Source: Oopsacas minuta
Lineage: Eukaryota; Animalia; Porifera
DNA: 64,000 bases
Direction: 5' to 3'
Assembly (NCBI GenBank): GCA_024704765.1
Contig: JAKMXF010000221.1
Span: 434,001 to 498,000, forward strand
Below, piece after piece: positions 22,939 through 54,517 of the stretch (position 1 is the first letter of the stretch; every line of letters begins with the position of its first letter). A model generated the notes under the pieces. It did not search any database. It was given only the letters and a program-made list of their open reading frames with translations, and had not been told where the DNA came from. A program made the position numbers and the translations under genes.

Positions 22939-22939
<1 letters not shown>

Positions 22940-22986: not shown

Positions 22987-22987
<1 letters not shown>

Positions 22988-23005
22988 AGGCAATGTCCCA
23001 TGTAA

Positions 23006-24463
23006 TTATCTTGGATTATTCCACCCCAGTACTATAGCTACAATAGTTAATGCTATAACTCCTCCCATTGCTAATCCTCCTACCAAGTCGATAAGTAGTT
23101 GAATTGTCCTTAGTATTTCCGTATAGAAGAATTTCTGGAAGAAGTAGACACACATGTAGCAGTCATACAGCATTGGTTTCTTCTCCTGCTGTCCTATTCG
23201 CTCTCTGACTAATGTGGTCCTCTCGTTACAGTTAGGGAATTCCTCAACATTTTGCTCATTTTCTACAATAGGCTGACAGAGCTGTTGATTAGCTACTGGT
23301 TCTTGTGGCGGGATTGCTATTTCTTGTGGACAGTTCGCCGCCTCACTAATTTGTGGGTATATTAGGTGTTCCCCAGTTACAACTTGGTCATACCCAGGGG
23401 GCCTGAAGTCATTTCTTGAGGGTGGGGTTACTACCCTGATGGAGCGAGTTATAGGGGCGCGAATACGTAATTTAGGTTTCCGCTTTTGTAAGCAGTCTTG
23501 CACACATTTCCCAGTCCTGTAAGATTGTGTGATTACGAGAGCAAGAATGTTAACCAACAGCCCGGATATTGTCTGTCCCTTGGTGACCCTGTCCTCCTCA
23601 GCTAGTGAGAAATATACCAGTGAGGCTAGCAACAGGAGGGTGAATAGGAATGTGAATATCTCGAATAGTGCAGTGTATACTCTGTTATAACAACACCAGT
23701 GATAACATCTTAGAAGGGTTGGTTGTTTAGACTTACTGACTACATATCTTATTGTTTTACACAAACGGTTAATTGAGAGGAATAGAAGTACTAGCCATAT
23801 CCAGAACCCCCAAAGGTAATACGCACATTTGTCCCCTACACAAGATAGCGCGCCTAAATCAGTGTTCACATATTCTGCGATGAAATATGTGCTACCGATT
23901 ACACTACCGCTCATGGCGTAGGTTGAACCAAATCCCAAAGAGTATAGGATATAACCTGTTGGAAATGTGAGTACTAATCCCCATAGACTCATACCAGCTA
24001 GCTCTCTTATTCCATCCGATTCTGTGGTAGTGTAATTGTAGATGTAGATGAATCTATTGCCTAGTAGGAAATCGAAAATTCCATTCCCCGTACTCTCGTT
24101 GTTAGGCAAGTAGGTTTCCCATGCCACATACAAACTGCTAATAGTTAGCAAGCTCACTGCAAGGCCTGCTCTAAAATCAAACGAGAGGATCCCGACAACT
24201 ATTCCAAGTGGAACGCCGATTAACAAAACTTGTATCAACTCATTTTGCCAGTCATACAACCCCGGTATCTGCAGTTTATCCAGCACATACTGAGTTAGTA
24301 TAGAACCTCCAAAGGATGCTCCAGTAACGAGCAACACTAACACTATAGTAAATATGAACCTTGTTACTCGCCAGGCACATTTGTTAGCTATATGGGTGTC
24401 AAATTCCTGTGTAGCAGTCTGGTCTCTATAGCTGTAACTACGGCTATTACCATTCTCGATCAT
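23006..24463 (-). CDS. Uncharacterised multipass membrane protein (485 aa)
   Basis: Long intronless ORF with about 9-11 hydrophobic segments and a Pro/Gln-rich loop before the last helix; no family recognised. Confidence 0.8.
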   Translation of the reverse strand: MIENGNSRSYSYRDQTATQEFDTHIANKCAWRVTRFIFTIVLVLLVTGASFGGSILTQYVLDKLQIPGLYDWQNELIQVLLIGVPLGIVVGILSFDFRAGLAVSLLTISSLYVAWETYLPNNESTGNGIFDFLLGNRFIYIYNYTTTESDGIRELAGMSLWGLVLTFPTGYILYSLGFGSTYAMSGSVIGSTYFIAEYVNTDLGALSCVGDKCAYYLWGFWIWLVLLFLSINRLCKTIRYVVSKSKQPTLLRCYHWCCYNRVYTALFEIFTFLFTLLLLASLVYFSLAEEDRVTKGQTISGLLVNILALVITQSYRTGKCVQDCLQKRKPKLRIRAPITRSIRVVTPPSRNDFRPPGYDQVVTGEHLIYPQISEAANCPQEIAIPPQEPVANQQLCQPIVENEQNVEEFPNCNERTTLVRERIGQQEKKPMLYDCYMCVYFFQKFFYTEILRTIQLLIDLVGGLAMGGVIALTIVAIVLGWNNPR

Positions 24464-24538
24464 CCTTGTTGTAATAGTATATCTATGATTGAATTAAAAT
24501 GATAATGTAAATAATTATGAGATTACTAGCGAGTATAT

Positions 24539-26467: not shown

Positions 26468-26803
26468 TCCATTTTTGGTCTGAATTCTAATATTATAATT
26501 GTTTTATGCTATATATTGAAACTTTTGAAATAACATTACCTGTGAAGCAATGCTTAATATGAAGGTATCTGCAATGAATAATTTTGTATTTTCTCCCAAG
26601 AGTTAGCTCGTATAAATACTGATATCATAATTTGAGCTAAGCCTACTGGCTCCTCCGCTTTATGATGTTAGGCCCCTAGAACTACTTCATAGCAATGAAC
26701 TACGTACTTAGATTCTTTGTTTAAGTCAGTATTGAGTTACATAATTTCTATCAATGCCCGTATTAATGATCTAAGAAACAAATAATTATACTAGAAATTA
26801 TCA

Positions 26804-27949
26804 ATGAAAACTCTCCGTCATCTGTCCTACTTAACAAATACATTGCCAGCTCGTTTCAATGTTCTAGGCATTGAGAGTAGTTTCGATGATTCTGCTGTTG
26901 GAATATTAGATAGTCATGGTAACATATATGCTCATGTGGAATGTTCCCAGTTATTGCATCATCTCCCTACAGGGGGTGTGAACCCTGTCATAGCCTCAGG
27001 ACTCCATAAACAGAATCTGCCCCCTCTCCTAGACCAGTGCTTTGACCGCTCAGGCTTGACACCTAAAGATATTCATGTAGTTGCTTACACCAAGGGACCG
27101 GGTTTGGGAGTATCTTTACTGCACGGGGCTAATTTAGCTGTAAATTTCTTCAGAGAAAACCTCTCACCCCCTCGCCTCCTAATCGGAATACATCATATGC
27201 TAGCTCATGCTCTGGTCCCTAGAATAAGTAACCGGATAGCTTTCCCCTACTTAACTCTCCTGGCATCTGGGGGACACTGTTTGTTATGTATCGTACAAGA
27301 ACTAGGTATTAGTGAGGTGATACGATTAGGTTCCACATTGGATACAGCACCAGGGAACGTATTGGACCATGGGGCCCGTCTCCTCCAGCTGTCCAGGTAC
27401 CCAGAATTCTCTGAGTGCTCCGGAGGACAAGCAATAGAGCGGATTAGTCTAAGAGGAACACTCCGACACCCTGTTCTTAATATCCTGCCAAGAGACAGAA
27501 ATGCAAACTTTTCTTTCAGCGGGCTAGGCAGCAGTTTAGAATACAAATTGAATTCTATAGCTAAACAGAGAATAGTAAGTTATCAAGATAAAGCTGACCT
27601 AGCTCTTTGGTTCCAGACATCATTAATCCGTCACATAACAACCAAAACACAGAATGGTATTCGATTTTGTAGGATACATTTCCCTCAAATAAACTCGCTA
27701 GTAGTTTCAGGAGGTGTTGCACAGAATCTAGCATTCCAGAAGGCAGTTACGGAGCTATGTAGGCAGCATAACTATACGGCTGTCTACCCTGCCCTTGAGT
27801 TATGTACCGACAATGCTGTGATGATAGCTTGGGCAGGAGTAGAGTACGCTAATGCAGGGATAGGTATAGAATCTCCAGAAGATGAGGTACACTTTATACC
27901 AAGATGGAAACTAGGGGAAGACTGGACCATGAAACTAACACAGAATTAA
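26804..27949 (+). CDS. OSGEPL1: Mitochondrial tRNA t6A threonylcarbamoyltransferase (Qri7/OSGEPL1)
   Basis: VLGIESSFDD, TKGPGL, HHMLAH, LLASGGHC, FSFSGL, LVVSGGVA, CTDNAVMIAWAG; short basic presequence. Confidence 0.92.
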   Translation: MKTLRHLSYLTNTLPARFNVLGIESSFDDSAVGILDSHGNIYAHVECSQLLHHLPTGGVNPVIASGLHKQNLPPLLDQCFDRSGLTPKDIHVVAYTKGPGLGVSLLHGANLAVNFFRENLSPPRLLIGIHHMLAHALVPRISNRIAFPYLTLLASGGHCLLCIVQELGISEVIRLGSTLDTAPGNVLDHGARLLQLSRYPEFSECSGGQAIERISLRGTLRHPVLNILPRDRNANFSFSGLGSSLEYKLNSIAKQRIVSYQDKADLALWFQTSLIRHITTKTQNGIRFCRIHFPQINSLVVSGGVAQNLAFQKAVTELCRQHNYTAVYPALELCTDNAVMIAWAGVEYANAGIGIESPEDEVHFIPRWKLGEDWTMKLTQN

Positions 27950-28015
27950 TATTCACTTGTTTGGTATGATCACTTATATTTGATTTATTTTGGGTGTCCT
28001 AATGGGATAATTTTA

Positions 28016-28135
28016 CAGTAAACTCGTTTTAACAAATTGCTCGGGACACCAGCTTCATTTGTTATAAGCGGACTAGGATCAATTATTTTCAAGCTAGGGG
28101 GTAAAGAATCAGTTGGTTCTAACGAGAGTTTACTG
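28016..28135. mobile_element. pogo-like MITE related to family A
   Basis: Left end TA|cagtaaactcgtt; right end taacgagagtttactg (reverse complement cagtaaactctcgtta). Confidence 0.6.
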
Positions 28136-28281
28136 GATATTGTAATTATTAGCAAATTGCCTCATCTTAGGAGAGCAACTAGCACCCCGAGTATAAGCAC
28201 GTTACATATGTGAGTCCCACTTTACTCTAACTACACTGACTTTATCCTCGCTTCTACAGCCCCACACAGTCTGTCTTACAC

Positions 28282-31200
28282 ATGGGAAATATAGAATCTA
28301 CAAACTTCCAGGATTCTTCTACGAAGACCCCCACCGGTCTCCCGGACTCCCCTGAAATGATTCCGGGAACTGAATCCTTCAAACTATCTATCCTCTTCAA
28401 CTCCTTACTTCTCCACGAAGCTCTGCGACTCGATAAGTCGGAGAAGATTGAGAGATTCCAGAAAATACTCAGTCATAAATCCTCCTTACAGGACTGGCTT
28501 AGAGAGCTCAGTACTAAGGGTGACGAGTGGGTCTCTAAGGAGGACATGGTCGATAAATTGGTACAATCTGGCATCCCGCAGGAGAACGCGCTCCAGTTTT
28601 TCACACATCTAGACGACTATACAATCGGCCGTCTACACCTACCTCGAATCCTGGATGAACTTGACAACGAGACTATCCGCAACGATATCCCTGCTTCTGT
28701 CAGTCGTCTGTCTGCTTGTGTCATGCTCCCATCTATCTTAGACGTATTCCTTCAAGGAGATACCCTACTAGACTCACAGCGGGAGCAAGCTCGTATGCTT
28801 AACACATACGTCAAGAACTGTTGTGCTCCCATCAAGGCATTGGCTAACAAAGAGCTACAATCTTTCTTCTTACTGTCCCAATCCAGACAGCAACTAATCA
28901 AAACTCATTTTGAGAAGTTCGGTAAGACAGTATTTGAAGCGGAAAAGAATGAAGACGCTCTCACTAGCCTGGAGGGATATCAGATGATGCACAGATGTTT
29001 CTCGAGTGTTCAGGTCTCTAGTAATCCCAGTCGCATCGATCAGCTGTTCGATGATAACAGTAGCACCTTCTGGCAGAGCTCAGGTACTCAAGGGGCACAT
29101 TTTATTAAAATATTTATGTTACCTCAGGTGTTTATCGAACAGCTGAGCATAACTATATCCAGTACTGATAACAGCTATACCCCACGTATAGTAGAAGTTG
29201 CAGCTGGACCCACAGAAAATTCTCTGCGGCGTGTTGCGTATAAGACTTTCTTAAGGAGAGGGTCTCGCTGTCAGACTGAGGTTTTATTGAACTTTACTAC
29301 CACATACTACAGGATTATACAGGTAGCTATATTTAGAACAACTGTAATTAACTCCGCTAGCCGCTCATATCTGTGCTAATATGCTCTCAAACCGTCAAAG
29401 TAGCATACCCTTTATTGGTTATATTGAAGTCCGATTTTATTCAAGTAGTTATCGCGGTCCCTTGAGCTTCGGTATTACTTGAGTTTACCGTATAGTATAC
29501 TCTAGTTTCGTCATCTGTTCATCTGATTACTTAGCCAGAAACAGAACCATTCAAATGCAGTTTAATACTCCAGTTAATCCGGGTCTCGATGGTCTGGTTC
29601 TATTGTAACTATTTTCCTATTTATTTGTAGATTAACATTAAAGAATGTGCTCAGGATGGCTGTGACACTAAAATAAGAGGACTACACATACAGGGATACA
29701 GGTCTAACACTATTCCTTCCTTCTCTGAGCAAGAAGCTACATACTCCTGGTTACTATGTATACTCACTGCTACAGCATCCATTTCCATAGCAACCAACCC
29801 TACATTCAGGAATATTATACTCACACAGAGTAATCACTATCTCAAACACATAACTCCGCTCTCTCTCTCATCATCTTCTGACAACAGACCTGTGTTTATT
29901 AACACTGATTTCGTAGAGCAATTGCACACATTCTTTAATCAGCTGTTGGATACGCCAGCTGATAATCAGCTAGACCTAGAGGCCTACAACCTCCTTCTAC
30001 AATTCTCATTAGCTCACGGATACATGCACCTACTCATGCCTCTACTTCAGAGATACATAAACACTGTAGTGCAATCAAGTGCCATAGACTCACTTCGGTT
30101 ACCATGTGTACCTCTACTCAACCGACTTACTAAAGTTATCCAGAACTTAGAAGCCGATTATGTGACCCCTCTGTCTCTCCGAATTGAACAAGTTGAAGGG
30201 TTTTCTAAACCTAGAGAGGAACTGTCTGGACTTCTTAACCATGAGTCAATTAACCCAGAATCTTCTGATTCAATCGCATACGTCAGTAAGGAGGATTGTT
30301 GTGTGTTGGATTTAATTCTTACTGAGTCTAAAGCTAGGCCTTTCAGTGTTAGAAAACTAAATGTTTTGAAGAAAGATGATAAATCTCTTTCTCCGCATTT
30401 ATGTCTATTATTCGTTGTACCGTCTCAATATATCGATCCTGAAAGCCACAAGCCTACAAATACTAAACAGCTGTTTGAGTTATACGCGAAATATGACAAC
30501 TGGACAATTGAAAATTGGAATAAATCACAAAAGGAGAAACAGACATACCCTGATCTCCCGGTCGCCTGTTTCGACATGACAACGGATAATTGGTCAGAGT
30601 ATGTTTCATTTGATAGAATTCTTGTAGCTAGTCACTGCTGTATGGTTAAGCTAATCAGACCTAAGAGAGAGGAGACTGGGGAAGATGAAGAGAACAAGAA
30701 GACATTTTCTGTCTACGCTTTGCAGTTATTTGGAGACATAGATCCGAGTATTGAGCTACAGAGAATATCGAACATCCTCTCGGAATTTCACACCCTCCCT
30801 CTACAGGACTCAGCCCTCGTGGACAGTACTACTCTTATCTTCCATCTCTTCTCTGCGTTGATTTCTCTAGTTAGAAATCAAATAGTTATTATTAACAGAA
30901 ATTCATCTGAAGTGAGTCAAGCTAAGAAAATGTATCTTACTTGTTTCGTGAGAGAGGCTCATATTAATTTGGATAATCTATCATTCTTGGCAGTATGGAA
31001 TGTGTTTTTGAGTCTGGAAGAGTTTGGTAATAAATTCCCTGAACACCGAGCTCTGAGCTTAGAAATTGCTAGTCAGCTGATCCTGAATTGTATGCCATTC
31101 TTCGTTACTTTTGAGAAACAGAAGAGGAATAAGGAATGTGATAATTTAAAAGCTAAACAAGAAGCACTGGAACATATTTTAGAAATAATTAATGACAATA

Positions 31201-38363: not shown

Positions 38364-41300
38364 ATGAGTGAATCAGAGAGTGATGTTAGCACTAGTGACT
38401 CTGATCAAGACTCAGGGGAGGAACGTCCCGCTAAGATACCTCGGGTAGAGACCGCTGGTAATGGCGAGCAGGACCAGGACGGGGATTCAGGGTCCGGAAC
38501 GGAGGACGATCTTGATGATGATGACGATGTGTCTAATGACGAGTATGAAGAACAGGAGGATCACAAACGTACATCCAAGCGTCCCGGACATGACATGATT
38601 CTAGACATGGCCGAAGTGAGTGACGGAGATGATGACTACGAAACGGACGGAGAGGACGGAATACAAGCACTCCTCCCTACCACTGACAAGGGAATGGGAA
38701 AGAGTAGAGCCAGGAGCGTAGAAGCAGACCCTTCCGGACACATGAAGTTCATGCAACAGATCAATGAGCTAGACGGAGACAAGATTGTAGAAGCTATGGC
38801 TAAGAGGTTCTCTGGGTATAATGCAGGTTCTTATGTTATGCAAGATGATGAGCACTCATATGAGATACAGCAACAGAGATTATTGCCAGGTAAATATTCA
38901 TATTATACTATTAATAGAGAACACATATGTACACAAAATCAGATTTTGACCATCCTTTGGAGTTCATATTTACGAGGTTCCATTGTTTCTATATTACAGG
39001 TATCAAGGACCCTAACTTATGGATGGTGAAATGTCGGATTGGTTTTGAGAAGGAGACGGCGTTCAATTTGATGAGAAAGTTTGTCTTCCTTCATGACAGC
39101 AAACCTCTGCTAATAAAATCTGTAATAGCCCCAGAAGCAGTTAAGGGCTATATCTATGTCGAGGCGTATAAACAGTCTCACGTTAAGCAGGCTATAGATG
39201 GGAACAGTAATTTGAACATAGGACAACACAACCAGAAAATGGTCCCCATCCAGGAGATGACAGATGTCCTGAAGGTGGTAAGGGACCCTACAGTCGTTAA
39301 GAAGGGTTCCTGGGTTCGTCTTAAGAAAGGAATCTATAGAGACGATATAGCACAGGTTGTGTATGTTGATAATTCACAGAATACTCTCTATCTGAAACTT
39401 ATTCCAAGATTGGACTTAAAGAAAATAGCAGCTAAATATGACTCTAAAAATAACAATAGACCCCTGCCTAGAAATAAACAGTTCAAAAGGCCGCCAGCTA
39501 AGCTGTTCGACGATGAGGCGATAGAGGAATGTGGAGGTACTGTCTCTAACGAGCGGGGCTTTCAGTTGTTTGAGGGAGACAACTATCAGAGCGGATTCCT
39601 CTGTAAATATTTCCCAAAGAGTGCTATACTTATGGACGGTGTTACCCCCACACTTAAGGAATTGGAAAAGTTTCAAACTAATCCTGAGGATATTGATGTT
39701 AATCTGAACAATTCAGCTAGAGATATAAAACTAATCCCGGGTGATTTTGTAGAAGTATGTGAGGGAGAGCTGAAGAACCTGCTGGGCAAGGTTACCAGTG
39801 TGGATGGTAGTAATGTTAATATCATTTCTAAACACGAAGAACTACAAACTGTCATGGAATTCCCGATCCGTGAACTTAGGAAATATTTCCAGATTGGGGA
39901 CCATGTTAAAGTGGTAGGAGGACAGTTTATGGGGGAGAGCGGACTAGTGGTCCGTGTGGAGGAGAACGTAGCAATTATCTTCAGTGATATTTCACGTGAC
40001 GAAATGAAGGTGCGACCCAGAGATCTCCAGTTGTGTACAGAGACCAGTAGCGGTATTGATTCACAGGGACAAAATGAAGTAGGCGATTTGGTACAGGTAG
40101 ACCCACAGACAGTAGGGATCATAGTGCGGATAGAAAGAGATTCCTATCGTGTACTTACTCACTACGATAAGATACAGTCTGTTAAACAACAAGCTGTGCA
40201 GAAGAAGAACTCCAGGAGAGCAGTTACTTTGGACAAAAATAATAATTCTTTGTCTGTTAAGGATTTAGTGAGGATTATGGATGGTAAGAAGAAAGGTAGT
40301 CAGGGAGAGATTCAGCATATATTCAGGAATTTTGTCTTTGTAAAGATTCATCAGTATTTTGAGAACGCTGGGTATGCTGTTGTTAGGAGTAAAGCCTGTG
40401 AACTGGTCGGAGGGCAAAACAAGCCAGCTGGTATCATAGGGACACCCAGAGCATCACCTCGACCCAATAACACACTTCAGAGTCCCCGTGTGGTCATGAG
40501 TAGTCCAAGAGGAGCCGGAGGGTATGGTAGAGGAGGGGGAAACTTTGCTAGAGACACTAAGCTAGTTGGACAGACAGTCCGCATAACTGTAGGTGCCTAC
40601 AAGAATCATATCGGTATAGTAAAGGATGCTACAGAGGCTCTAGCTAGAGTAGAGCTACACACTAGTCCGCTAACTATTAACGTAGATAAGACTCATCTTG
40701 CTATCGTGTCAGACCAGAAGACCGGGTCACAGACCGTCGCCCATACGCCTAACCTTGGGTATCAGACTCCAATGCATGGCCGATGGGGAGGGGCTACACC
40801 CATGCATGGTAGCCGTACCCCTATGTATGGGAGTATGACACCAGACCCTGGATCAAGGACACCTCATTATGGGTCTGAGACTCCTCTACATGACCCCTCA
40901 CGCACCCCCTCTGCATGGGACCCCAGTATAGCCACTCCCCGACACGAATTTTCTTACCCATTCGACACCCCTATGACTCCAGTTGGACATCTCTCTGAGG
41001 CATCACCCTACCCCTCGCATTACGGAGCAAATCAGACCCCTCTGTACGGGACAGAGCCAATCAGTCCGTCTCATTTCGACTCTGTAACTCCTACACCAGG
41101 ACAGTCCGTCACTCCAGGGGTCACTGCCTCCAGAGACATCTCCTTTCTACCCCCAGAGACCTTAAAAGGGCTAGAAGTACAGATATCACATCCTGGAGGG
41201 TCTCTGAACGGTAAGACAGGTGTAATCCTACATGCTACCCTCATGAACAAAGCTACGGTTAAACTACATCATTTGAGAGAGACAGGGAGGGATACAGTCG

Positions 41301-41494
41301 ACCTGCAGTTGAGAGATTTAGAGCTAACACAGGTCAGTGAGGGGGACCAGATTAAACTCCTCAGGGATCAGGACAACTCCGTGTACAAGCTCTTGCAGAT
41401 AGATTCTGATGATGCTGTCCTGAGGGGACAATCAGGTGACCTCCGGATGGTACCATTGGACAAGGTAGCCAAATATACTTCTGTGATTTCTTAA
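38364..41494 (+). CDS. SUPT5H: Transcription elongation factor SPT5 (1,006 aa)
   Basis: Exons 38364-38889 and 39000-41494 (LLP|[12 protein letters not shown]). Acidic N-terminus, NGN domain, KOW repeats, CTR repeats TPMHG/TPMYG/TPHYG. Confidence 0.97.
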
Positions 41495-41556
41495 ACTTTC
41501 TGATTTGTGAATGATCTTATGCACAGCTGATTATTTGAAATTAAAGAGTTGAGTGC

Positions 41557-41609
41557 ATTGCCTAGCAACGAGAATAACTATGTTAAACTGTGCCGGTTTT
41601 GGCGCCATT
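41557..41609. promoter_or_regulatory. RFX X-box-like and E2F/YY1-like motifs upstream of GSTK1
   Basis: ATTGCCTAGCAAC (12/13 match to GTTGCCTAGCAAC) at 41557-41569; TTTGGCGCCATT at 41598-41609. Confidence 0.4.
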
Positions 41610-41685
41610 CTAGATATACTTAATTATTTAATATGATTTTAGTTCCGTAATATTTATATAAAATAGCAGTTCTATAATTAGTAAC

Positions 41686-42348
41686 ATGTCTCGCACTCTT
41701 GTGAAGCTATACTATGATATTGTGTCTCCCTACGGGTGGTTAGGATTTGAGATTCTATGTCGACACCAGCACGAATGGAAAATACACCTAGATCTGAATC
41801 CCGTATTCCTGTCCGGGCTAATGAAGTCTACTGGTAACACCCCTCCTGGTATGGTACCTGCTAAAGCTAAGTACATGAACATTGAGTTGAAGAGACTCTC
41901 AGATTTTCACAGGGTCCCGTTGTCACTACCAAACAATTTATTTGAATTCATGTTTACTAACAATAACATATCTGCACTGAGGTTATTGACATTGGTTAAG
42001 ATAAGTCATCCAGATAAATTAGAAGTATTGTCGAGGGAATTTTTCAAAAGAATTCTCGCTACGGATGAAGCTAAAATGGATTTACATATATTACAGACTG
42101 CGATGGAGACTGTGGGAATAGTAGGGAAGGAAGCTAGCCGGTTGTTGGAGGAAATGGGCACCCAGGGGAAGGAGGGACTGAAAAAATGTACCGCTGAGGC
42201 TCTCGAGTACGGGGCCTTTGGGGTACCGTATATGGTAGCATTTGTGGGGGACAAACCCAACCCTTACTTCGGTACGAATCAGATCTACCTACTGGCTGAT
42301 CTCCTGAGGGAGAAGTTTAATGACAAGACTACAAGATCAAAATTATAG
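41686..42348 (+). CDS. GSTK1: Glutathione S-transferase kappa 1
   Basis: LYYDIVSPYGWLGFE, GNTPPGMVPAKAKYM, EALEYGAFGVP. Confidence 0.95.
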   Translation: MSRTLVKLYYDIVSPYGWLGFEILCRHQHEWKIHLDLNPVFLSGLMKSTGNTPPGMVPAKAKYMNIELKRLSDFHRVPLSLPNNLFEFMFTNNNISALRLLTLVKISHPDKLEVLSREFFKRILATDEAKMDLHILQTAMETVGIVGKEASRLLEEMGTQGKEGLKKCTAEALEYGAFGVPYMVAFVGDKPNPYFGTNQIYLLADLLREKFNDKTTRSKL

Positions 42349-42427
42349 AAATATATTTTATAGAATTATTAGCTTATAATTTGTTGTTTATATTAATTAG
42401 TTTCTACACAATAACCTCTGAATATAA

Positions 42428-43636
42428 TTACCAATGAAAGCCAGCTGTTGCTGTCTCTACAATCAGCTGAGCTATAGCTAACGATGATGTAGCTGCTGGC
42501 GAGGGAGCGTTCATAATATGTAGAGCTTTATCACCTCTCCATTCGTAATAGAAATCCTCCACCTTGTTACCCTCTCTGTCTACCAGTAGTGCCCTTACTC
42601 CACTACCCCTGATGATTCTCTTTAGGTCCCCAGCAACGAGCTCTGGAATGTAACTATTCAATGTAAACATATCGATTGGTTTGAGGATAGAATTCAGTGA
42701 GCTAATAGCGAATCTCCAATGCATTGCTGTTAATCTATAGAACCCAGGATGTGTTATTATATCTTTGAAATCTGTAATATTCAGACTAGTTCTGGTGTCA
42801 CCCTCTCTTGATAGAGCCAGGACCGCAGTTGGTCCAACCCACACAGTCCCATCTAATCGAGGTGTGAAATGTACCCCTAGGAAGGAGAGGTCTGTGTCTG
42901 GTACCGGATATATATTTCCTCTTATTAGCTTAGCTTTCTCAGGATTTAGTAGAAGATATTCTCCTCTAATAGGTATTACTCTAATATCTCTTTTACTTGC
43001 TAGTCTATCTGCTTGTGAACCTCCACACACTATCACATACTCTGTATTTATGGTACCTTCTTTAGTTAACACCTTTCCTTTCTGGAACCCTGTTACCTCT
43101 CTCTTTAGGATAATATCCCCTCCCATTTCTAGAAAGTCTTGTCCCATACTCTGTGTCATTTCTCTGTAGTTCACTATTCCTGTGTGAGGACTGTAAATAG
43201 CTCTCAGTCCCTGACAAGATGGTTCTATCTCCCTCAACTCTTCTCTGTCTATCATTCTCACATTTCTCACACCGTTAGCTACAGCCCTGCTGAACAGCTG
43301 TTCCAACCGATCTAGCTCCCCCTCCCATCTAGCTACTATAACCTTCCCACATTGTTTGTGTCTTATCCCTCTCTCCCTCAGATACTTATATGTCATGTCA
43401 GATCCTTCCACACAAAGCTTAGCCATCATAGACCCTGGCTTATAGTAAATGCCTGCGTGAATAACTCCACTATTTCTACCTGTCTGATGCAAGCCTAGAC
43501 TGTGTTCCTTCTCTAGGATAGCTACTCGCATATCTGGGTACACTCTCTTTAGCTGCCTTCCTGTAGCTACACCGACTATGCCCCCTCCTACTATTATTAC
43601 GTCATATAGTTTTGCTATGCTTCTAGTCCCATACAT
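42428..43636 (-). CDS. L2HGDH: L-2-hydroxyglutarate dehydrogenase
   Basis: DVIIVGGGIVG, HQTGRNSGVIHAGIYYKPGS, IYPVPD..FLGVHFTPR, NAPSPAATSSLAIA. First ATG at 43636; the track's 43651 is a TTG start. Confidence 0.95.
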   Translation of the reverse strand: MYGTRSIAKLYDVIIVGGGIVGVATGRQLKRVYPDMRVAILEKEHSLGLHQTGRNSGVIHAGIYYKPGSMMAKLCVEGSDMTYKYLRERGIRHKQCGKVIVARWEGELDRLEQLFSRAVANGVRNVRMIDREELREIEPSCQGLRAIYSPHTGIVNYREMTQSMGQDFLEMGGDIILKREVTGFQKGKVLTKEGTINTEYVIVCGGSQADRLASKRDIRVIPIRGEYLLLNPEKAKLIRGNIYPVPDTDLSFLGVHFTPRLDGTVWVGPTAVLALSREGDTRTSLNITDFKDIITHPGFYRLTAMHWRFAISSLNSILKPIDMFTLNSYIPELVAGDLKRIIRGSGVRALLVDREGNKVEDFYYEWRGDKALHIMNAPSPAATSSLAIAQLIVETATAGFHW

Positions 43637-43643
43637 TCTAATA

Positions 43644-43762
43644 CTAATCAACTCCCATTACATCGATAAATACCGCTTATAGCAAAGATCTCATCTGTCA
43701 TACCGAATTCCGTATGAAGTAATTATCGCGGCCCTTGAACTTCGATATAACAGGAATTGATT
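43644..43762. mobile_element. MITE family A copy immediately 5' of L2HGDH
   Basis: aatcaactcccattacatcga...gaagtaattatcgcggcccttgaacttcgatataacaggaattga. Confidence 0.65.
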
Positions 43763-44172
43763 TTATAACACATAACACACGTACAATAGGGCTGTCATAA
43801 TTCTATATATCTGAATTATATCTTCTAATTAGTGTACAATACCAATGTATTGAACCTTGTGTTTTGTCATGGCAATAGTGCGTGTATAAGATCATTATTA
43901 TTATTATAAAATTTCCTATATTGCTTTGCTATAGAGCATTTCAGGAGTCCTGTGCTATCTCGTAAACAGGGAGATAATACACTTTATCTAATCAAATATA
44001 CACAAACACTTCTGCGTGGCTTTGTTCACCTCCATTTCGGGGATAGATACCCTACTAATTTTAGTAGCAGTCCACCTGGCTATCATGCAAATACTTAGAA
44101 GTGTCTCCTCTTATAAATCTCATAAATGTGTATATTTCTTACAAAAATTCATATTTCAACTATTGTATTATT

Positions 44173-44810
44173 ATGGCAGAAGGAATGGAGCTGCGAGAGA
44201 GGATTAGGGATTATCAGTTCAGGGAGAAATTGACAGAGATCAGATCTGACGCAGAGTTCAGAGAATGTTTCCCGTGTGTTTCGTCTCCTCTCAACTTTTT
44301 CTTGCTAGACAGATTACCTATCTTAAAATGGGTACGGAGCTACTCCTTCAAGTTTGCAGTCAGGGACCTGATAGCTGGGATAACAGTCGGACTGATGGTA
44401 CTGCCACAAGGTCTAGCTTATGCCAGAGTAGCAGGTGAGAAGTGAGTTTAATCTCAGTCAACTGTTTATAATTTAATTACTCTCATTTTACATATTATCT
44501 ATCAGGTCTTCCTATACAATACGGTCTCTACTCTTCTTTCATGGGATCTTTCATTTATTTCCTGTTTGGGACAGCTAAAGATATTACTATAGGACCGACA
44601 GCTATCGTGTCCACACTCGTAGCTCATAACGCAACCAAGGGGCGGGACCCTGCCCTATTCGCCTGCTATGCTATTGCACTTAGTCTCATTTGTGGAATGG
44701 TACAGATGTTATTAGGGGCTTTCAATCTAGGATTTGTTGTAGAATTTATCTCTTATCCAGTTATAAATGGATTCACGTCAGCAGCTGCCATTACAATTGC
44801 TGTAGGCCAG

Positions 44811-44882
<72 letters not shown>

Positions 44883-47800
44883 CACAAACAAACAATGCAG
44901 TATTTATCCATAAGAAAGGAAGCAAATTTTGACATCTTACAAATGTAATATTAAAGTGGCAAAGATATACAGCTAACTCCCGTAAATCTAACACGGATAT
45001 ATTAAAATACTCGCTTATATCGAAGGCTTAAAATGTACTAATATGGTCAGAAACCGTCGAAGTAATTATCACGGCCCCTTGAGCTTCGATATAACGAGAG
45101 TTACCTGTAGTATACTCCTGCAATAATTTCCGAATATATTCCTATAGTTACACAGCCTGTTAGGCCTCGATCTAACAGGAACTAACTTCACATCAAAACA
45201 TACATTCATTGAAAATGTGTACGAGAACTGTAGATACATAGCTCATCTTACACCTGCTGATTTAATCTGTGGATTGACATGTATGATAATTCTGTTTTCT
45301 TTCAAAGAAATGAAGTCCTCCATGGATAAATGGAGAGCCCCTAGTCTTTACAATCCGCTCGATTTCGTCCTTAGACAGATCCTATGGATTGTAATGACGG
45401 CTAGGAATGCAGTAGTGGTTATAGGAGCTTCTCTAATTTCATTCGCCCTGAGTATGACTGGATACCATTATCTTACACTAGTGGATCACTTAAAACCAGG
45501 TGACGTAATTCTATCCATATATTCATATGATTAATTATAACACTGGTCATCAGTTCTCCAAGGTTTGCATACAGCATCATTTATCAGCTACTCGCATCAG
45601 TAACATCATCTGACCAATCAGATTATCAGCTCTATCCCATTTTACCTAGTCATTCAATCTAGTATTATGGTCTAATTGAAATTTATTTTGGAAATACCTT
45701 CCACAGGTCTCCCTGCACCCTATCTTCCACCCCTGAACTCTACCGTTATAGGGGAGCTAGGCTTTGGGGGGATAGTACTTGTACCGATGATCAGTATCCT
45801 GGAGAGTATAGCTATAGCTAAAGCTTTTGGGAGGAAGAATAATTACAGAATTAACGCTAATCAAGAAATTCTCACTCTTGGATTAGCTAATATTCTTGGA
45901 GCATTTGTACAGGCATTTCCCGTAAGCTATAAATAGAAACAATTACATCCGCTGCTCTACTGTAACTCTATATACAGGTAACAGGAAGCTTCTCTCGAAC
46001 AGCTGTTAATTCCCAGAGCGGAGTAGCTACACCAGCTGGAGGAGTATACACTGGTATCCTTGTCCTGTTAGCTCTACAGTTCTTAACACCAGCTTTCAGC
46101 TATATTCCAACTAGCTCTCTAGCTGCTATAATCATTACAGCAGTACTACCAATGATAGACTGGAGACTTCCTATACAGATGATTAAGGTGTATCCTATTG
46201 ATATACTGTGGTGGTTGATATCTTTCTTGGGGACTCTATTCGTCGGGTAAATTATTATAGCTCTATCTATCCATTCTTTCCGTTGCTAGGTAGCGTTTGG
46301 ACCATTAATGCAGCTGTTCCCAAACTTTTTCATCCGTGGACCGGACTGGACCACCTATGGCAATTTTCACTTATTCTGTGGGCCCACCAGTTGTCTTACG
46401 TGAACCGCTACATTAATGGGCTCGATTTTCTTTCAACCGATTTTCTATACATTACACAATTCAAAGTTAAAGCATACAAATAATAACATTATCTTGCTAG
46501 GGCAGTTTGGAACAAGGAGTGTTGATAGCGTGTGCAGGATCTCTAATCCCAGTCCTATACAGAATGCTTAGACCCTCTCTTATAATCAGAACTGAGCCTC
46601 CGGAGACCATCTATGTGTTCATTAATGGCGGTCTTACCTTCCCAGGTTGTTCTATATGAGTTGCTATTCTCTACATTCATATGTATAATATGCTATACAC
46701 TAGATTATTAAATTTCACTCACTTTATTGTTATAATATTAGTTTATGGTAACAAACTTGTATCGCTTCATGTCAGCAATCAATTGTGAGTTAATCGAGTC
46801 TCTGGGTCGACACCCTCCTATCTCATTACCCAACCAAACTCCTGTACTCCTCGGGAGAGGGAGAGATACCCTCGTATCTGACAAGAGATGCTCTAGAGTA
46901 CAGTTAGAGTTAATTGCAGATTACACCTCTCAAGAAGTATCAGTACAACATAAAGGATCACAGGATTCTAGCGTAGCGGGACAGATCCTTGCTAATGGGG
47001 ATAAAGTTATTGTAGGAAACGGATCGTATTTCTGTCTGTTAGGAGATATGTTTAAGTATAATATATTCTTTCGTATGAAAAGTTCATTGGGGAGTCAATC
47101 ATCTCCAATAAAAGATGAGGATAACGAAACTCTCCAAATTGAGCCAGTAGCCAAAAGATCCAAGCTTGATTACTTCTTAAAATCTTCCAATCATACATTG
47201 CAATCTCCTATTAGTAATGGTAAATGGTCGATAGACGGTAGCATAGTTATACACAAATCACCACTGTTGTATGGAAAGATAGCTGCCTTTGATCTCGACG
47301 GTACTCTCATTACTACCAAATCAGGAAATGTGTTTCCAAAGAATATTTCCGATTGGAAACCTCTGTATACAGGTGTGAAAAATAAACTACAAAGTCTACA
47401 TCATAACGACGGATATGACATCGTGGTATTCTCCAATCAGATGGGTATATCTACTGGTAAGACGAGCATAACAGGAATGAAAGAGAAGTTAGATTCAATT
47501 CTCAGATTTTTTGAGGTCCCAGCTAATATAATATTCGCAACTAAGAAGGATATTAACCGTAAGCCTGCTCCTGGTATGTGGTCCTATTTCCAAACTAACA
47601 GTGGAGACTGTCCGGCAGATATAGCTGATAGTTTCTACTGTGGGGATGCAGCAGGTCGTCCAGAGGACAAGCCTATCGGAAAGAGGAAAGATTTCTCTGA
47701 TTCAGATCTCAAATTCGCTCATAACGTTAGTTTGACATTTTATACGCCAGAGGAATTATTCTTAGGTCAGGAGCCTCCCTCTCTCTCTTTCGGTAACAAA

Positions 47801-49071
47801 TTCAATCCGTATGAGTATAGGAATGATATAGAGTTAAATAAGATACATCTCTTGTCACCTGAGGGAGCTAAAATACCCTTTGAGGAACAAGAATTAATAT
47901 TATTGGTTGGGTGTCAGGCCTCTGGGAAGAGTTCGTTTTATCGGGAACATCTAGCTGCTAATGGATATATACATATTTCTCAGGATATCTTGAAGTCACG
48001 GGATAAATGCTTGTTGTCAACAGAACAGTTATTGACAGCAGGAAAGAATGTTGTTATTGACAATACAAATCCAGATAGAGCGACTAGATCACGATACATA
48101 CAACTAGCTAAGAAGTGTAATGTCCCAGTACGTGTATTTTGGCTTGTAACATCTATAGACCATTGCAGACACAATAATCTGTTCAGACAATTGACTGATA
48201 ACTCAAAATCACATCAAAATATTGATGATAGAGTTTTGAATATTTATCAGAGTAAATTCGAGGAACCCCAGGTAGAAGAGGGGGTGATGGAAATCGTGAG
48301 GGTACACATGATTCCAACTTTTGCGAGCAAAGAACTCGAGGACTTGTATTTCAAATTTCTAGTTTAATTATTCGTAGATTATAACCGACCTTAATGTTAG
48401 CTATAAGTACTGTGTGGAATTGCTGGATTTTTGACGGTCAATTCAGTGTGGAAATGATGATTAAAGGCCGAGATTAAAGAGCTAATAGTTATTGAGTGCT
48501 GTGAAGATATTGGAGTGCAGATTAGTTGTTTCTTGAAGCAATGATTTGAATTCAAATACTCCTGAGGACTCTCTTATAACTGTTTAGCTTTATGTAAACA
48601 CTGCCGAAGCGAATTCTGATCCACACTTAGATACATAAAATCACCCTAGTTATGTGGCCAATTATAGCATAACTAAGAGCCATTACCGTTGCCATTATGT
48701 TCAAAATTGTATTCTGACATCTCTCCTCTTCAGGTCCAGATTATTTGAGGCGTCTGATTACAGAGAGCCGCGAACAGACTGGAGTAAGTCATGTTCAGCT
48801 AGACTTCACTTCTGTTACTCAGATAGACTATACTGTATTACAGGGATTAGAAGAACTAGCTATTGAGCTTAATAGTCAAGGAGTAGAGCTACATATTATA
48901 AACACACAACCTCAAATCAGAAAGTATTTCAAGAGGGCTAAACTCAAACACATCGATATACAAGATCCTCCCTTACTACAGCCACTAGGTCAACAGCCTA
49001 GATCCTCTGAATCCGATCCCACGATTAACCTAACAACACAAAAGTATGCGGACTATAATTCTATTCCTTGA
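44173..49071 (+). CDS. SLC26A11: Sodium-independent sulfate anion transporter SLC26A11-like (626 aa, 7 exons), host of nested PNKP
   Basis: Exons 44173-44434, 44506-44810, 45148-45499, 45707-45921, 45978-46241, 46501-46645, 48734-49071 (1,881 nt). DLIAGITVGLMVLPQGLAYA, PIQYGLYSSF, NQEILTLGLAN, VTGSFSRTAVN, STAS domain DFTSVTQIDYT. The exon-5 donor is uncertain. Confidence 0.88.
44812..44881. repeat. (TAT/ATT)n microsatellite, ~23 units, beginning inside the SLC26A11 intron-2 donor
   Basis: CAG|gttattattatt...; the source of the poly-Ile and poly-Tyr artefact ORFs in the track. Confidence 0.99.
44970..45107. mobile_element. MITE family A, best-preserved copy (138 bp, TA-flanked)
   Basis: TA|CAGCTAACTCCCGTAA...ATAACGAGAGTTACCTG|TA. 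Confidence 0.8.
46311..46410. mobile_element. 100-bp hAT-type MITE with a perfect 8-bp TSD
   Basis: cattaatg (46303-46310)|cagctgttcccaaac...gaaccgcta|cattaatg (46411-46418); related to the element at 60942. Confidence 0.85.
46745..48367 (+). CDS. PNKP: Polynucleotide kinase 3'-phosphatase, intronless, nested in SLC26A11 intron 6 on the same strand
   Basis: FHA (LLGRG...DKRCSR), HAD phosphatase FDLDGT...SNQMG...RKP...YCGDAAGR...DFSDSD, kinase P-loop GCQASGKS, VIDNTNPD. Start at 46745 or 46769. Confidence 0.96.
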   Translation: MVTNLYRFMSAINCELIESLGRHPPISLPNQTPVLLGRGRDTLVSDKRCSRVQLELIADYTSQEVSVQHKGSQDSSVAGQILANGDKVIVGNGSYFCLLGDMFKYNIFFRMKSSLGSQSSPIKDEDNETLQIEPVAKRSKLDYFLKSSNHTLQSPISNGKWSIDGSIVIHKSPLLYGKIAAFDLDGTLITTKSGNVFPKNISDWKPLYTGVKNKLQSLHHNDGYDIVVFSNQMGISTGKTSITGMKEKLDSILRFFEVPANIIFATKKDINRKPAPGMWSYFQTNSGDCPADIADSFYCGDAAGRPEDKPIGKRKDFSDSDLKFAHNVSLTFYTPEELFLGQEPPSLSFGNKFNPYEYRNDIELNKIHLLSPEGAKIPFEEQELILLVGCQASGKSSFYREHLAANGYIHISQDILKSRDKCLLSTEQLLTAGKNVVIDNTNPDRATRSRYIQLAKKCNVPVRVFWLVTSIDHCRHNNLFRQLTDNSKSHQNIDDRVLNIYQSKFEEPQVEEGVMEIVRVHMIPTFASKELEDLYFKFLV

Positions 49072-49232
49072 AGCTTTGTAAAGTGTGAAAAGATTCGTAC
49101 ATATCCTATTTTACTGTGTATTTATTTTCAGAACTGTTTAATAGTATGATTGTTTGCAATAGCTCTAATATTTAATATGAACCCCCCCCAGTGTGTATTA
49201 TCAAATGCTTCAATTCAATACAGTTAGATTTT

Positions 49233-50072
49233 ATGGACAGAATTAATTTTATCACACAAGAGCATTCTAGGACGCTAGACGGTCTGCATAGAGAGATACA
49301 TAAGCTACAAGGACGCTGTAATTATCTTACTTTCAAGCTACACTTCTCGAATGAGGATCAGGATAACATTGCGGATGAGAATGGAAGTGATAACACTAAT
49401 GCATTTGATAATATAGATAATCTCAGAGCACAACTAGAGGATGTGACACAGTCACTCGGTGCGGAGTTACATCACAAAAGTGAGATAATAAATGAATTAG
49501 AAAATCAATTGTTAGAAGCTCAGAAAGAAATTTCAATTTTATCAGAGAAACAGAGACACTCTCAGTCAGAATTAGAATCAAAGTCTAAAGCAATAGCATT
49601 CCTAACCAGTAGTCTCCAGCAGATTAAATCTAAACTAGCTACAAGTCCTCTTATACAGAAAATAAGCAAGCCTCTTCAACCAATTAGTAGCACGGTTTTC
49701 TTCGCCGAGGAGGAATTCCAGACTCCAACTTATAAGTCCCTCCCTCCGTCTTTTGACCCCATGAGCTCTCCCAAATTCCTTGTACCCACTCCCCCAGCAG
49801 AAAATCCAAAGAATCGGGCCTCTCATCCTCGGTATCACAGACGATATAGCGCCCCTAGACTGCGAACAAAGTCTGTAAACGAATCTCTCCCCCTCGCTCT
49901 CCTCCCTGAAGACAAGATTCATTTGGTCCCGGTCCCTTCTAAGACCAACAAAAAATTGGTCCTACCCCCGATCCCAAACACCAGCAGAGAGTCTAACTCC
50001 AGGAGCGGACCAATGGTTGGTACCTTACAATCCTCAAAGGCGACCCGATCAACTCGTGTGAAGGATTTCTAA
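49233..50072 (+). CDS. CCDC92-like: CCDC92/CCDC74-family coiled-coil protein
   Basis: FITQEHSRTLDGLHREIHKLQGRCNYLTFKL matches the family N-terminal motif; coiled coil; C-terminal LPPI motif. Confidence 0.72.
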   Translation: MDRINFITQEHSRTLDGLHREIHKLQGRCNYLTFKLHFSNEDQDNIADENGSDNTNAFDNIDNLRAQLEDVTQSLGAELHHKSEIINELENQLLEAQKEISILSEKQRHSQSELESKSKAIAFLTSSLQQIKSKLATSPLIQKISKPLQPISSTVFFAEEEFQTPTYKSLPPSFDPMSSPKFLVPTPPAENPKNRASHPRYHRRYSAPRLRTKSVNESLPLALLPEDKIHLVPVPSKTNKKLVLPPIPNTSRESNSRSGPMVGTLQSSKATRSTRVKDF

Positions 50073-50580
50073 AAATTCCATCACTCACTTTCCGTTTCTA
50101 CTTTGTACTCACAGACTAGCAGTTCGTAATGCTATTGCATCTTTTATATGTATTATATCCCATAATTCAATACTAATTTATCTTGAGATATAAGCTACTA
50201 CTGGATAATGATAGTTGATGGAATCTATTCTATTTATAGGGACAGTTATGCCTTAACTGTATCAGCCATGTGACACCCCTGTATTCACTAATTATGTCAA
50301 GTTCACATTCCCTTCCCTATCAATTTACAGTCTCAGATAGGTGTTAAAAATAGGTATAAACCACTTCTTAAATAGTACAGTGAATGCGTAATTCACAATT
50401 CAATATACCCAATAGAATATCTGCCTACACATTCTGGGTAAGCCCTCAAATCTGATAGGTCAACTTATTTGTTACAAATACCAGGGATGTGTCATTTAAA
50501 TTTCTACGTCACAGAAACATTAACTATATTGTGAGTCTATTCTAAGTGAATTGAATACACCAAATTATAGCATAAGCTCA

Positions 50581-52325
50581 TTAACATATAAATTTGTGTT
50601 CCGTATACTCTCCTATGTTTCTACCTTTGGTTTCATACGGCAATAGGAATGTAAGGATAGCTCCTATTACCCCTGTTACACCATATAGTGTTATTGCAGC
50701 ATAGAAACTAGTCTGTAAGAGAATTACAGCTGCGAATGAGGTTGTCATCATGCCGAATCTTGCCATGAGATTAGCCATCGATAAAGCTGAGCTCCGTATA
50801 TGAGTTGCATATACTTCTGGGGTATATACATAGACAACTTGTAAGCTACCTGATATACACGCACGTGCTGTGAATAGAAAAACTGTTTTTATAATTTTAT
50901 CATTAACCCCCGTGCAAATATTCAGCAGCAGAGTGAACAAACTTCCAATCAAGAATAGGATTATGGTCGTCAGTTTTCTGCCCAGAATATCATTGAAGAG
51001 GACTGCTACTAGAATTCCTGGGAACTCTCCGAATGATATTAACAGGGAATAAATTAACTCTTCCTCACTCAACACTTTACATCTTGTATCAGTAATCGTA
51101 TTGTTTGTGTGGACTCTCGTGACGCAGTGTGTATCGTATTGGAATAATCCAGTAGTTAATAGTACTGCCCCGAAGTAGCAGAACCCGCCAATATACCAAA
51201 TCATGCTCAACAGTAGACTAGTCAATCGATATTCTCTAGAAGCGAGTTCTAAAAGGTTTCCTTTCTGTTTTTGAGGTCTCTCTATGAGAGGTAATTCCGA
51301 GGGGACAGAGTGTACAAGCTCCCCCGGGGGTAGGGCCCTACAGTTCTGTTTGGCCCCTGATTTAAGCACCTGATAGGCTTCACCCAGTTCATCACATTCT
51401 AGGAGATACCTAGGGCTCTTAGGAATGCAGGGTATAATGAATAACACAAGTATACCTGGTATAGTAGTAAACCCGATCATGTATCTCCAGCCTAATCTCT
51501 CCAGGACTAGAATAGCCAGGAGACATTCTATAACACTACCCCCTGCCCACGCTAATTGTAATAGTAAGATTGATGAGGAGCGATACCTGGTGGGTAGAAA
51601 TTCTGTAAAATATGTTATAGATTGTGTTAATGCACTCAAACTAATTCCTACGCAAAATCTAACTGTCAGTACCCAGTTGAAGGTAGGAGCTAGTGACGTC
51701 ACGAGTCCAAAGTAGACAAGGAAAAACGTGGAAATCCATAATATCCTTCTTCTCCCGAACCTACAATAAATGAGAATTCAGTTTGTTTCCTAAAATTCCA
51801 AATTACATTGTAACCTCCACAAACCGTGTGTCAGGGAAGCCGAAATGCTGCCATGTTACCCCGAAAAATGGAGTACTAGGAATTCGCTCTATTCAATTCC
51901 CTCCGTTTCGGAAATTCCCAGTTTCTACGGGCCCGCTTGTTGAGGTTTCACTGAACGTATATCAATTCGTGATAACTGTTCTATTTTCAGACTTACTTAT
52001 CACTTAATATTCCCCATGCCAGAGACCCAAGAGCTTCTCCAGCAAACACTACCACAGTAATAATAGCTACATCATATGAGGATAATGACCATAGACACTG
52101 TAATGTCGGTGATATAATTGTTAGGAGCATTAACTCCATAGAGTCTGACATCCATAGGAGCGCTGTGAAAATACTCAATTTTGATTGAAACAGTCCATAT
52201 CCTATCTTCTCTATAGCCCTGTCTATTGTGAAATTTAGGTTTTCGCTACTCTCTAACTCTCCTTCTTCACCCCTTCCAATCGTCTCTGAGTTCCTATTGT
52301 TCCCATAATCTCTACTATGATTCAT
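50581..52325 (-). CDS. SVOP: Synaptic vesicle 2-related MFS transporter (502 aa)
   Basis: Exons 52325-51997 and 51760-50581 (DK|FGRRR). AIEKIGYGLFQ, DSMELMLL, TEFLP, GEFPG, YVYTPEVYATHIRS, LPYETKGR. Confidence 0.88.
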
Positions 52326-52552
52326 TTCAATCAATAATGAATACTCAAATATTATTTGTATATTTTATTCATAAAAATAAGCCTAGTATCTTGTATAATT
52401 ATCCCGTGATCTTAATAATAGATTTCTCATATTTATGAATAAACAAAAGTTTATTGTTTACAAGCCATGTGCCACTATCGTCAATTTATTAGCTTCAATA
52501 GCTCGATATTCCGAGCTGGTGGGCCCAGGGGTAACCAATATATCAAGGTTGC

Positions 52553-52609
52553 AACCGAATATTATCAGTATTTGGTTAGGCTGCTATTCATGAATACTGA
52601 TATTCGGTT
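52553..52609. repeat. Imperfect hairpin (likely MITE remnant) in the SVOP/ATP5F1B divergent gap
   Basis: AACCGAATATTATCAGTATT ... AATACTGATATTCGGTT. Confidence 0.5.
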
Positions 52610-52930
52610 TGATCGGTTTCAAACTTGCAATATATTCATTCTCATATCGTCGATCCACTCATACTCACAGGCACCGAGTCCGGGGAGGGGGCTGGGTAGC
52701 TTAGGCCCCTGGTTACACCACCATAGAGTTGATATAAAACATGTGTGAGCCCCCAAGCCCCCACGATAATAATACATGACTAACATGAGCTATCAAGTTG
52801 TTAGAAAGTTCGGCGCTCCTCAATTCTCTCAGCTTCCTATTTGTAAATCGCCCATTTTTCTCTTAGCATTTATAAGCTCAGTACTTTATAACATATTTCT
52901 CACCTCTCAGAACTAATTACTGCTGAATAA

Positions 52931-54517
<1,587 letters not shown>

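Follow-up and report, generated by a model that had tools for sequence, protein, structure and literature searches.

A conserved same-strand PNKP gene and a candidate long box C/D RNA inside intron 6 of a SLC26A11-type transporter gene of the glass sponge Oopsacas minuta

We analysed a stretch of 64,000 nucleotides (nt) from the glass sponge Oopsacas minuta (assembly GCA_024704765.1, contig JAKMXF010000221.1, positions 434,001 to 498,000 of the forward strand), referred to below as the window and numbered from its first letter; it is compact, intron-poor animal DNA of 39% G+C. Intron 6 of a SLC26A11-type anion transporter gene (the host gene) contains a complete, intronless PNKP gene on the host strand and, between the PNKP stop codon and the host acceptor, a third feature that is the new addition of this analysis, a candidate long box C/D RNA resembling a small nucleolar RNA (snoRNA). 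The explanation that best accounts for the locus as a whole, to which we assign a probability of about 0.7, is a same-strand nested locus in a compact glass-sponge genome that has long been conserved. The data show that the host transcript is formed by cis-splicing over both passengers of the intron and that RNA contains PNKP in unspliced, colinear form, its assembled 5' end falling on the AG of an ATTAG conserved in six species. We infer that the glass-sponge spliced leader is joined at this AG, which would serve as an unpaired 3' splice site, as similar acceptors ahead of other start codons of the window appear to do; PNKP would in this way acquire a capped 5' end of its own, regardless of whether the precursor begins at the host promoter or at a PNKP promoter. 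The snoRNA-like RNA would be freed either from the excised intron or from the RNA downstream of the PNKP 3' end. The features of the intron are as follows.

46646 to 48733, plus strand: host intron 6, 2,088 nt, phase 1 (G/GT = Gly), splitting the STAS domain and holding PNKP and the snoRNA-like element
46712 to 46741, plus strand: candidate spliced-leader acceptor, a pyrimidine-rich run ending in ATTAG, with the AG at 46740-46741, 3 nt before the ATG
46745 to 48367, plus strand: PNKP coding sequence, a single exon without introns, 540 amino acids, wholly within host intron 6 and on the host strand
48445 to 48627, plus strand: box C/D snoRNA-like element, about 183 nt, starting 78 nt past the PNKP stop; its end precedes the host acceptor by 106 nt

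RNA evidence for this arrangement comes from sequencing run X4, which belongs to the same sample as the DNA-like runs X1 and X3. The library type of X4 is unrecorded and none of the runs carries an RNA label; X4 was taken as cDNA because of its exon-biased depth and because its contigs contain four GT..AG joints found in neither X1 nor X3. These X4-only joints all lie at predicted exon borders (44434/44506, 45921/45978, 46246/46506 and 46645/48734, a slash marking a splice boundary here and below). The last of them (46642>48731, 'cut +3') skips 2,088 nt with GT..AG borders at a depth of 1,241, the donor reading ...TTCCCAG/GT at 46645 and the acceptor ...CTTCAG before 48734. The transporter transcript arises by ordinary cis-splicing, exon 6 being joined to exon 7 over PNKP and the snoRNA-like element. 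The first-pass annotation had ended the transmembrane exons at 46645, resumed the STAS exon in phase at 48734, numbered the intron of 2,088 nt between them as the sixth and singled out their junction beforehand as the refutation test for the nesting. All these coordinates hold, seven coding exons confirm the number of the intron, and the junction is present in the cDNA-like contigs.

PNKP is represented in RNA as well, and without an intron, since the X4 contigs 46740-48262 and 48233-48745 follow the genome colinearly and without gaps. The X4 coverage of PNKP (46740-48745) begins at the acceptor; contigs alone show neither transcript ends nor independence of the transcript. Mean contig depths in X4 were 442 for 46740-48262, 236 for 48233-48745 and 51 for a retained-intron contig. 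We also observed that the X4 contigs break within the PNKP coding sequence at 48233-48262, where they overlap by 30 nt and the DNA contigs are continuous, and that a donor-like CAG/GTAGAA lies near this break, at 48271/48272. Contigs of X1 and X3 run colinear with the window over 45061-48815 and 45063-49999, respectively, with zero differences, which excludes misassembly. Together with the gene order in five other genomes described below, they rule out the local misassembly that the first-pass annotation had named as a possible source of error. The same-strand nesting of PNKP in the SLC26A11-type gene is, in our view, real beyond reasonable doubt.

The nesting is conserved. We compared the locus with five relatives (L001-L004 and L008), the metagenome-assembled contigs that carry the closest PNKP proteins, at 62-69% identity. 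A L2HGDH-like gene on the minus strand, the SLC26 exons, PNKP and the STAS exon follow one another in this order in 5/5 of them. CCDC92 follows the STAS exon in four of the five, and no CCDC92-family gene was called there in L003. At the protein level, exon 6 is 78-85% and exon 7 67-80% identical in the relatives, and both exons flank PNKP in each. The relatives also keep the phase-1 G/GT donor and a YAG/G acceptor of intron 6, whose size ranges from 2,101 to 2,378 nt. Third codon positions of PNKP in the window share only 46-55% identity with those of the relatives, indicating that the nesting has outlasted the saturation of synonymous sites. In a further organism (organism B, about 95% identical), contigs join exon 6 to the intron, and the end of PNKP to exon 7. 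At farther intronless PNKP loci (L005-L007, 38-39% identity), no SLC26 exons were found within 6 kilobases, which limits the nesting to a clade of six close genomes. As a side observation, a microsynteny block at 38927-54517 is wholly or partly common to the five relatives and comprises SPT5, a DSBA-like gene, the L2HGDH-like gene (minus strand), SLC26A11 with PNKP, CCDC92, an MFS sugar-transporter-like gene (minus strand) and an ATP-synthase alpha/beta-family gene. No call was obtained for the MFS gene in L001 and L002 or for the ATP-synthase gene in L001.

The host gene was searched exon by exon in Pfam and PDB, and its exons are listed here.

44173 to 49071, plus strand: host SLC26A11-type gene, 7 coding exons of 1,881 nt in all (626 codons plus stop), all introns GT..AG
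44173 to 44434, plus strand: exon 1, from the ATG; Pfam Sulfate_transp positions 3-26; donor CAG/GTGAGA, X4 joint 44434/44506
44506 to 44810, plus strand: exon 2; Sulfate_transp 28-130 (E 1e-26); best solved structure 9iar, residues 75-169 (E 4e-27)
45148 to 45499, plus strand: exon 3; Sulfate_transp 133-221; boundaries TATAG/ and CAG/GTGACG set by sequence and frame, its own junctions being absent from the X4 joints displayed
45707 to 45921, plus strand: exon 4; Sulfate_transp 229-297; X4 joint 45921/45978, GT..AG
45978 to 46246, plus strand: exon 5; Sulfate_transp 299-379; 9iar residues 360-443 (E 1e-21); X4 joint 46246/46506
46506 to 46645, plus strand: exon 6; end of the membrane domain, linker and first STAS strand, 46-47 codons
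48734 to 49071, plus strand: exon 7; rest of STAS (Pfam E 2.8e-13, profile positions 25-96 of 106); stop codon at 49069-49071

Exons 1-5 tile positions 3-379 of the 380 of Sulfate_transp in order, and STAS lies C-terminal to the membrane domain. The best solved match of exon 7 is to residues 513-565 of 9iar, the human-type SLC26A11 ('sodium-independent sulfate anion transporter'), so that the matches of exons 2, 5 and 7 to this structure are colinear. Exon 6 alone gave no Pfam or PDB match, being too short at 46 amino acids; it corresponds to the gap of about 50 residues that separates the exon 5 match from the exon 7 match in 9iar. The STAS match of exon 7 begins only at profile position 25, and exon 7 therefore needs exon 6. 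In the solved-structure search, E values for SLC26A11 were 6-8 orders of magnitude better than those of the next match for exons 2 and 5. By these best structure matches, the host gene is probably of the SLC26A11 type among the SLC26/SulP anion transporters.

Host intron 2 and the downstream neighbour of the host gene call for separate mention. A short interspersed repeat of very high copy number, also abundant in organism B, occupies 44986-45110 in intron 2; its summed depth in the DNA-like runs is about 19,000-31,000 vs about 90-360 in the single-copy flanks, and many contigs end or rearrange there. A search of this repeat revealed neither inverted nor direct repeat structure and, at seed 9, no terminal inverted repeat. 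An (ATT)n microsatellite of about 27 units (44811-44892) begins exactly at the intron 2 donor (CAG/GTTATTATT...), and read contigs are cut there. Downstream, a CCDC92-like gene (plus strand, within 49072-50072) starts at 49233, preceded by ...ACAGTTAG/ATTTT, and forms an operon-like tandem with the host gene.

The guest gene has the domains of PNKP in the expected chain order: FHA_2 (residues 14-82), PNK3P (178-339, E 2e-52) and AAA_33. Residues 176-521 match structures of the catalytic domain of mouse PNKP (1yj5 and 3zvl, E 1.6e-83), and PNKP FHA chains were matched among solved structures at E 5e-10 to about 1e-9. The translation carries FDLDGT (the phosphatase motif DxDGT), GCQASGKS (the kinase Walker A motif, GxxxxGK[ST]) and DNTN. 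On the basis of these domains and motifs, the nested open reading frame (ORF) is predicted to encode a bifunctional polynucleotide 3'-phosphatase/5'-kinase. It shares with mammalian PNKP (1yj5, 3zvl) the catalytic motifs and the succession of an FHA domain, a HAD-type 3'-phosphatase and a P-loop 5'-kinase, and it differs in being encoded without introns. Identity to PNKP of animals beyond the five close relatives is about 38-46%. A look-up of exactly this product in the protein collection returned no gene on record, and the gene is likely unannotated, as this exact product is absent from the collection.

An intact intronless PNKP on the host strand, with its ATG about 100 nt past the host donor and after ATATTAG/TTT, had been described in the first-pass annotation; we read the same in the sequence, the ATG lying 99 nt 3' of the donor behind ...TTATTGTTATAATATTAG/TTT. 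Were exon 6 cis-spliced to the AG of ATTAG, the product would read GTT TAT GGT ... TGA, out of the PNKP frame and stopping after 15 codons. Such joining yields no fusion protein of exon 6 and PNKP, as the same annotation had argued. In the six-species alignment, the first ATG of PNKP (46745) varies, being ATC in L003, GTG in L004 and shifted in L008, and the second Met (46769), 8 codons downstream, is kept in all six species. The true start of PNKP may thus be 46769, and the start at 46745 may be specific to this species.

We then considered how PNKP could obtain a 5' end inside a host intron. The sequence before its start carries the motif of an unpaired 3' splice site conserved in six species: ATTAG lies 3-39 nt upstream of the PNKP start in all of them, and the rest of the segment from the donor to the start is unalignable. 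The X4 contig of PNKP ends at 46740, on the AG of ATTAG, plus 3 letters foreign to the genome. By bin arithmetic, X4 depth is low or absent on 46646-46739, the part of the intron before the candidate acceptor. Similar signals precede other start codons of the window: an AG occurs within 9 nt of the start codon in 21/28 large ORFs vs 55% of control ATGs (p = 0.02), and TTAG within 14 nt of the start in 7/28 vs 5% of control ATGs (p = 4e-4). We infer that spliced-leader addition at 46741/46742 is the most likely mechanism for the 5' end of PNKP, and we hold it to be reasonably probable.

Downstream of PNKP, the alignment of six species revealed the following parts of the snoRNA-like element.

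48445 to 48452 paired with 48620 to 48627, plus strand: terminal stem, AGUGUGGA with UCCACACU, 5-8 base pairs, kept in six species
48454 to 48460, plus strand: box C, AUGAUGA (AAUGAUGA at 48453-48460), invariant in six species
48464 to 48479, plus strand: invariant block of 16 nt, before a degenerate box D'
48592 to 48615, plus strand: invariant block of 24 nt, before box D
48616 to 48619, plus strand: box D, CUGA, invariant in six species

Boxes C and D sit directly inside the terminal stem, which is the layout of a C/D kink-turn, and the two invariant blocks occupy the expected positions of the D' and D guide elements. The mean identity of the element over the six species is 76%, vs 46-55% at third codon positions of PNKP. 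One stem position shows compensatory change (pair types GC:4, GU:1, AU:1), and the fold z-score of the element is -2.9. It is present in one copy per related locus and nowhere else. A relaxed Rfam search of 48368-48733 gave only matches below threshold. Each of those on the same strand was to a small nucleolar or Cajal-body RNA and was anchored on box C; SNORD21, a C/D family, appeared below threshold and more weakly on the opposite strand at 48514-48604. These features suggest that the element at 48445-48627 is a C/D snoRNA, an assignment that we consider likely.

Several observations weigh against the explanation proposed here. The RNA support comes from one run of unrecorded type and from contigs only, and the shorter side of the key joint is 28 letters. 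No 3' end of PNKP was seen: the X4 contig 48233-48745 extends without a break past the end of PNKP into host exon 7. At the 5' end, the 3 unaligned letters at 46740 fit template-switch residues at a true transcription start equally well, with AT-rich sequence resembling a TATA box about 30 nt upstream. As for the snoRNA-like element, it falls below the threshold of every Rfam family (the best, snoR113, at 18.2 bits vs a gathering score of 47), and the search of the whole window at gathering threshold returned no family. At about 183 nt, it is longer than most C/D snoRNAs, usually of 70-120 nt. No target was identified; the invariant 16-mer has at least 120 exact metagenome matches, and those listed have unrelated flanks and are mostly bacterial coding sequence, which makes them uninformative. 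A possible 12-nt complementarity of the block beside box D to the 5' stem-loop of U6 snRNA was noted, and no target is claimed from it. The missed Rfam family and the atypical length speak against membership in a named family, without counting against the C/D class as such.

The mechanism proposed above is indifferent to where the precursor of PNKP begins. A stronger version, close to one considered in the first-pass annotation, would place an operon inside the intron, with a single pre-mRNA from the host promoter as the sole source of both products. Each molecule would then give either the transporter mRNA by cis-splicing or the PNKP mRNA by leader addition at 46741 and an intronic 3' end, and the lariat or the RNA remaining downstream would be the source of the snoRNA. 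The common strand of host and PNKP, the position of the acceptor only 95 nt 3' of the host donor, the unbroken RNA contig linking PNKP coding sequence with host exon 7 and the conservation of the arrangement in six species are in line with this view, as is the start of CCDC92 161 nt after the host stop with another TTAG acceptor. However, no read or contig joins host exons 1-6 to unspliced PNKP sequence, and the depth over 46646-46739 is apparently near zero. We regard such an operon as a tentative possibility on the unlikely side, and the same doubt attaches to the simpler claim that host and PNKP share one precursor RNA. The functional coupling of DNA repair to anion transport that the first-pass annotation had drawn from the arrangement is hypothetical. 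Somewhat more doubtful still than the operon is the fullest form of the idea, namely that one RNA polymerase II unit, conserved across glass sponges since before their synonymous sites became saturated, gives three unrelated products by competing processing of the intron: SLC26A11 mRNA, PNKP mRNA with an added leader and an intronic 3' end, and a long box C/D RNA from snoRNP assembly on the intron RNA that is left. If true, no polycistronic unit would have been shown in a sponge before this one, an 'operon inside an intron'.

An inner poly(A) site between 48367 and 48733, as the first-pass annotation had envisaged, is not supported by the alignment. The sole canonical poly(A) hexamers downstream of PNKP lie within the snoRNA-like element and, as this element is conserved and C/D-like, they provide no evidence for such a site. 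One of them, the ATTAAA about 100 nt past the PNKP stop, was tried as the inner poly(A) signal and dropped for the same reason. The contig depths are compatible with an end of PNKP near 48485, without demonstrating one.

A different account of the 5' end dispenses with the leader altogether. PNKP could have its own promoter in host exon 6 or in the first 95 nt of the intron and a leaderless start at about 46740; the nesting would then be purely positional, with no RNA processing in common with the host. The finding of only 3 foreign letters at 46740, such as template-switch cDNA leaves at a real start, speaks for this account, and so do the scarcity of RNA over 46646-46739 and the TATA-like sequence upstream. 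The conserved element, however, is acceptor-like, an ATTAG after pyrimidines, and the same motif stands ahead of other start codons in the window; in addition, the use of a spliced leader has been published for glass sponges (PMC10282587). An own promoter without a leader is thus, in our judgement, improbable, and spliced-leader addition remains the preferred mechanism for PNKP.

The third alternative concerns the downstream element, which might be a structured 3' untranslated region or a 3'-end-processing element of the PNKP mRNA, with ATTAAA as its poly(A) signal. The ATTAAA at 48473-48478 is indeed invariant in six species, 96-125 nt past the stop, and no Rfam family was reached. By arithmetic only, the depth of 236 for contig 48233-48745 would fit the PNKP depth of 442 continuing to about 48485 and background thereafter. 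Against this, the invariant runs of 16 and 24 nt exceed the needs of a hexamer signal, AUGAUGA and CUGA lie directly within the conserved stem in the kink-turn layout, and every same-strand Rfam match below threshold is to a small nucleolar or Cajal-body RNA and aligns on box C. We consider a role of the element in PNKP mRNA to be rather improbable and keep the C/D snoRNA as its most likely identity. Finally, that the nesting is an assembly artefact, or that the STAS exon belongs to another gene, has a negligible chance in view of the zero-difference DNA contigs of two runs across 45061-49999, the same gene order in five other genomes, the 46645/48734 junction in RNA-like contigs and the dependence of the exon 7 STAS match (from profile position 25) on exon 6, and we found no point in its favour.

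Elsewhere in the window, a tRNA-Leu(CAA) gene on the minus strand (24560-24630) lies within the first 100 nt of a long ORF on the plus strand (24539-26467) and 97 nt from the start of an ORF on the minus strand (23006-24463). The true start of the plus-strand ORF may be downstream of its overlap with the tRNA gene.

Taken together, the locus is an ordinary example of glass-sponge genome packing, and the exceptional standing that the first-pass annotation had given it is not upheld, because gene nesting is common and already published in glass sponges (PMC10282587). As a conserved locus with RNA support, it is suited to the study of how a same-strand guest escapes removal with the host intron, a question that the ctenophore and glass-sponge genome papers raised and left unresolved. 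It also illustrates that annotations that disallow nesting can miss core genes, which bears on claims of core metazoan gene loss in O. minuta. The annotation of this species holds only 83 nested genes, and the authors of the Aphrocallistes vastus genome paper attribute such low counts to annotation settings (PMC10282587). In the genome paper of O. minuta, there is no mention of nesting or of trans-splicing.

Same-strand nesting in an animal with a spliced leader is also known from the ctenophore Hormiphora californensis, where such genes are termed 'parallel' nested genes (PMC8527503). Its authors state that parallel nesting requires host and guest to be processed separately (PMC8527503). The ctenophore belongs to another phylum and has another leader, and the mechanism has been shown in neither case. 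The leader-resolved operons of nematodes and tunicates would offer a further parallel if the host pre-mRNA is the precursor, as an internal ORF would likewise be freed at an unpaired acceptor. Known operons, in contrast, are tandem genes in which formation of the upstream 3' end is coupled to downstream trans-splicing, whereas here the guest lies within an intron and the flanking exons are joined over it. A 2021 review describes operons as unreported in sponges (PMC7986045).

The candidate RNA downstream of PNKP is comparable to the intronic C/D snoRNAs of sponge ribosomal-protein genes (PMC3412847), with which it has in common a box C, a box D, a terminal stem and an intronic position upstream of the acceptor on the host strand. 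It differs from them in its length of about 183 nt, in an intron that also holds a protein gene and in a transporter host that is not translation-related. The closest parallel is the glass sponge A. vastus, for which 2,432 nested genes (12.4%) and a spliced leader of about 37 nt have been reported, with glassin as the one example of nesting (PMC10282587). Both cases involve a single-exon gene in an intron of another gene, a compact genome of the hexactinellid type, conserved nesting and a leader in the group. As far as the available part extends, the A. vastus paper gives counts and the glassin example, without strand, RNA processing or the present gene pair (PMC10282587). The O. minuta locus is thus a further case of published glass-sponge gene nesting, to which it adds a conserved intron with three occupants and a likely unannotated PNKP.

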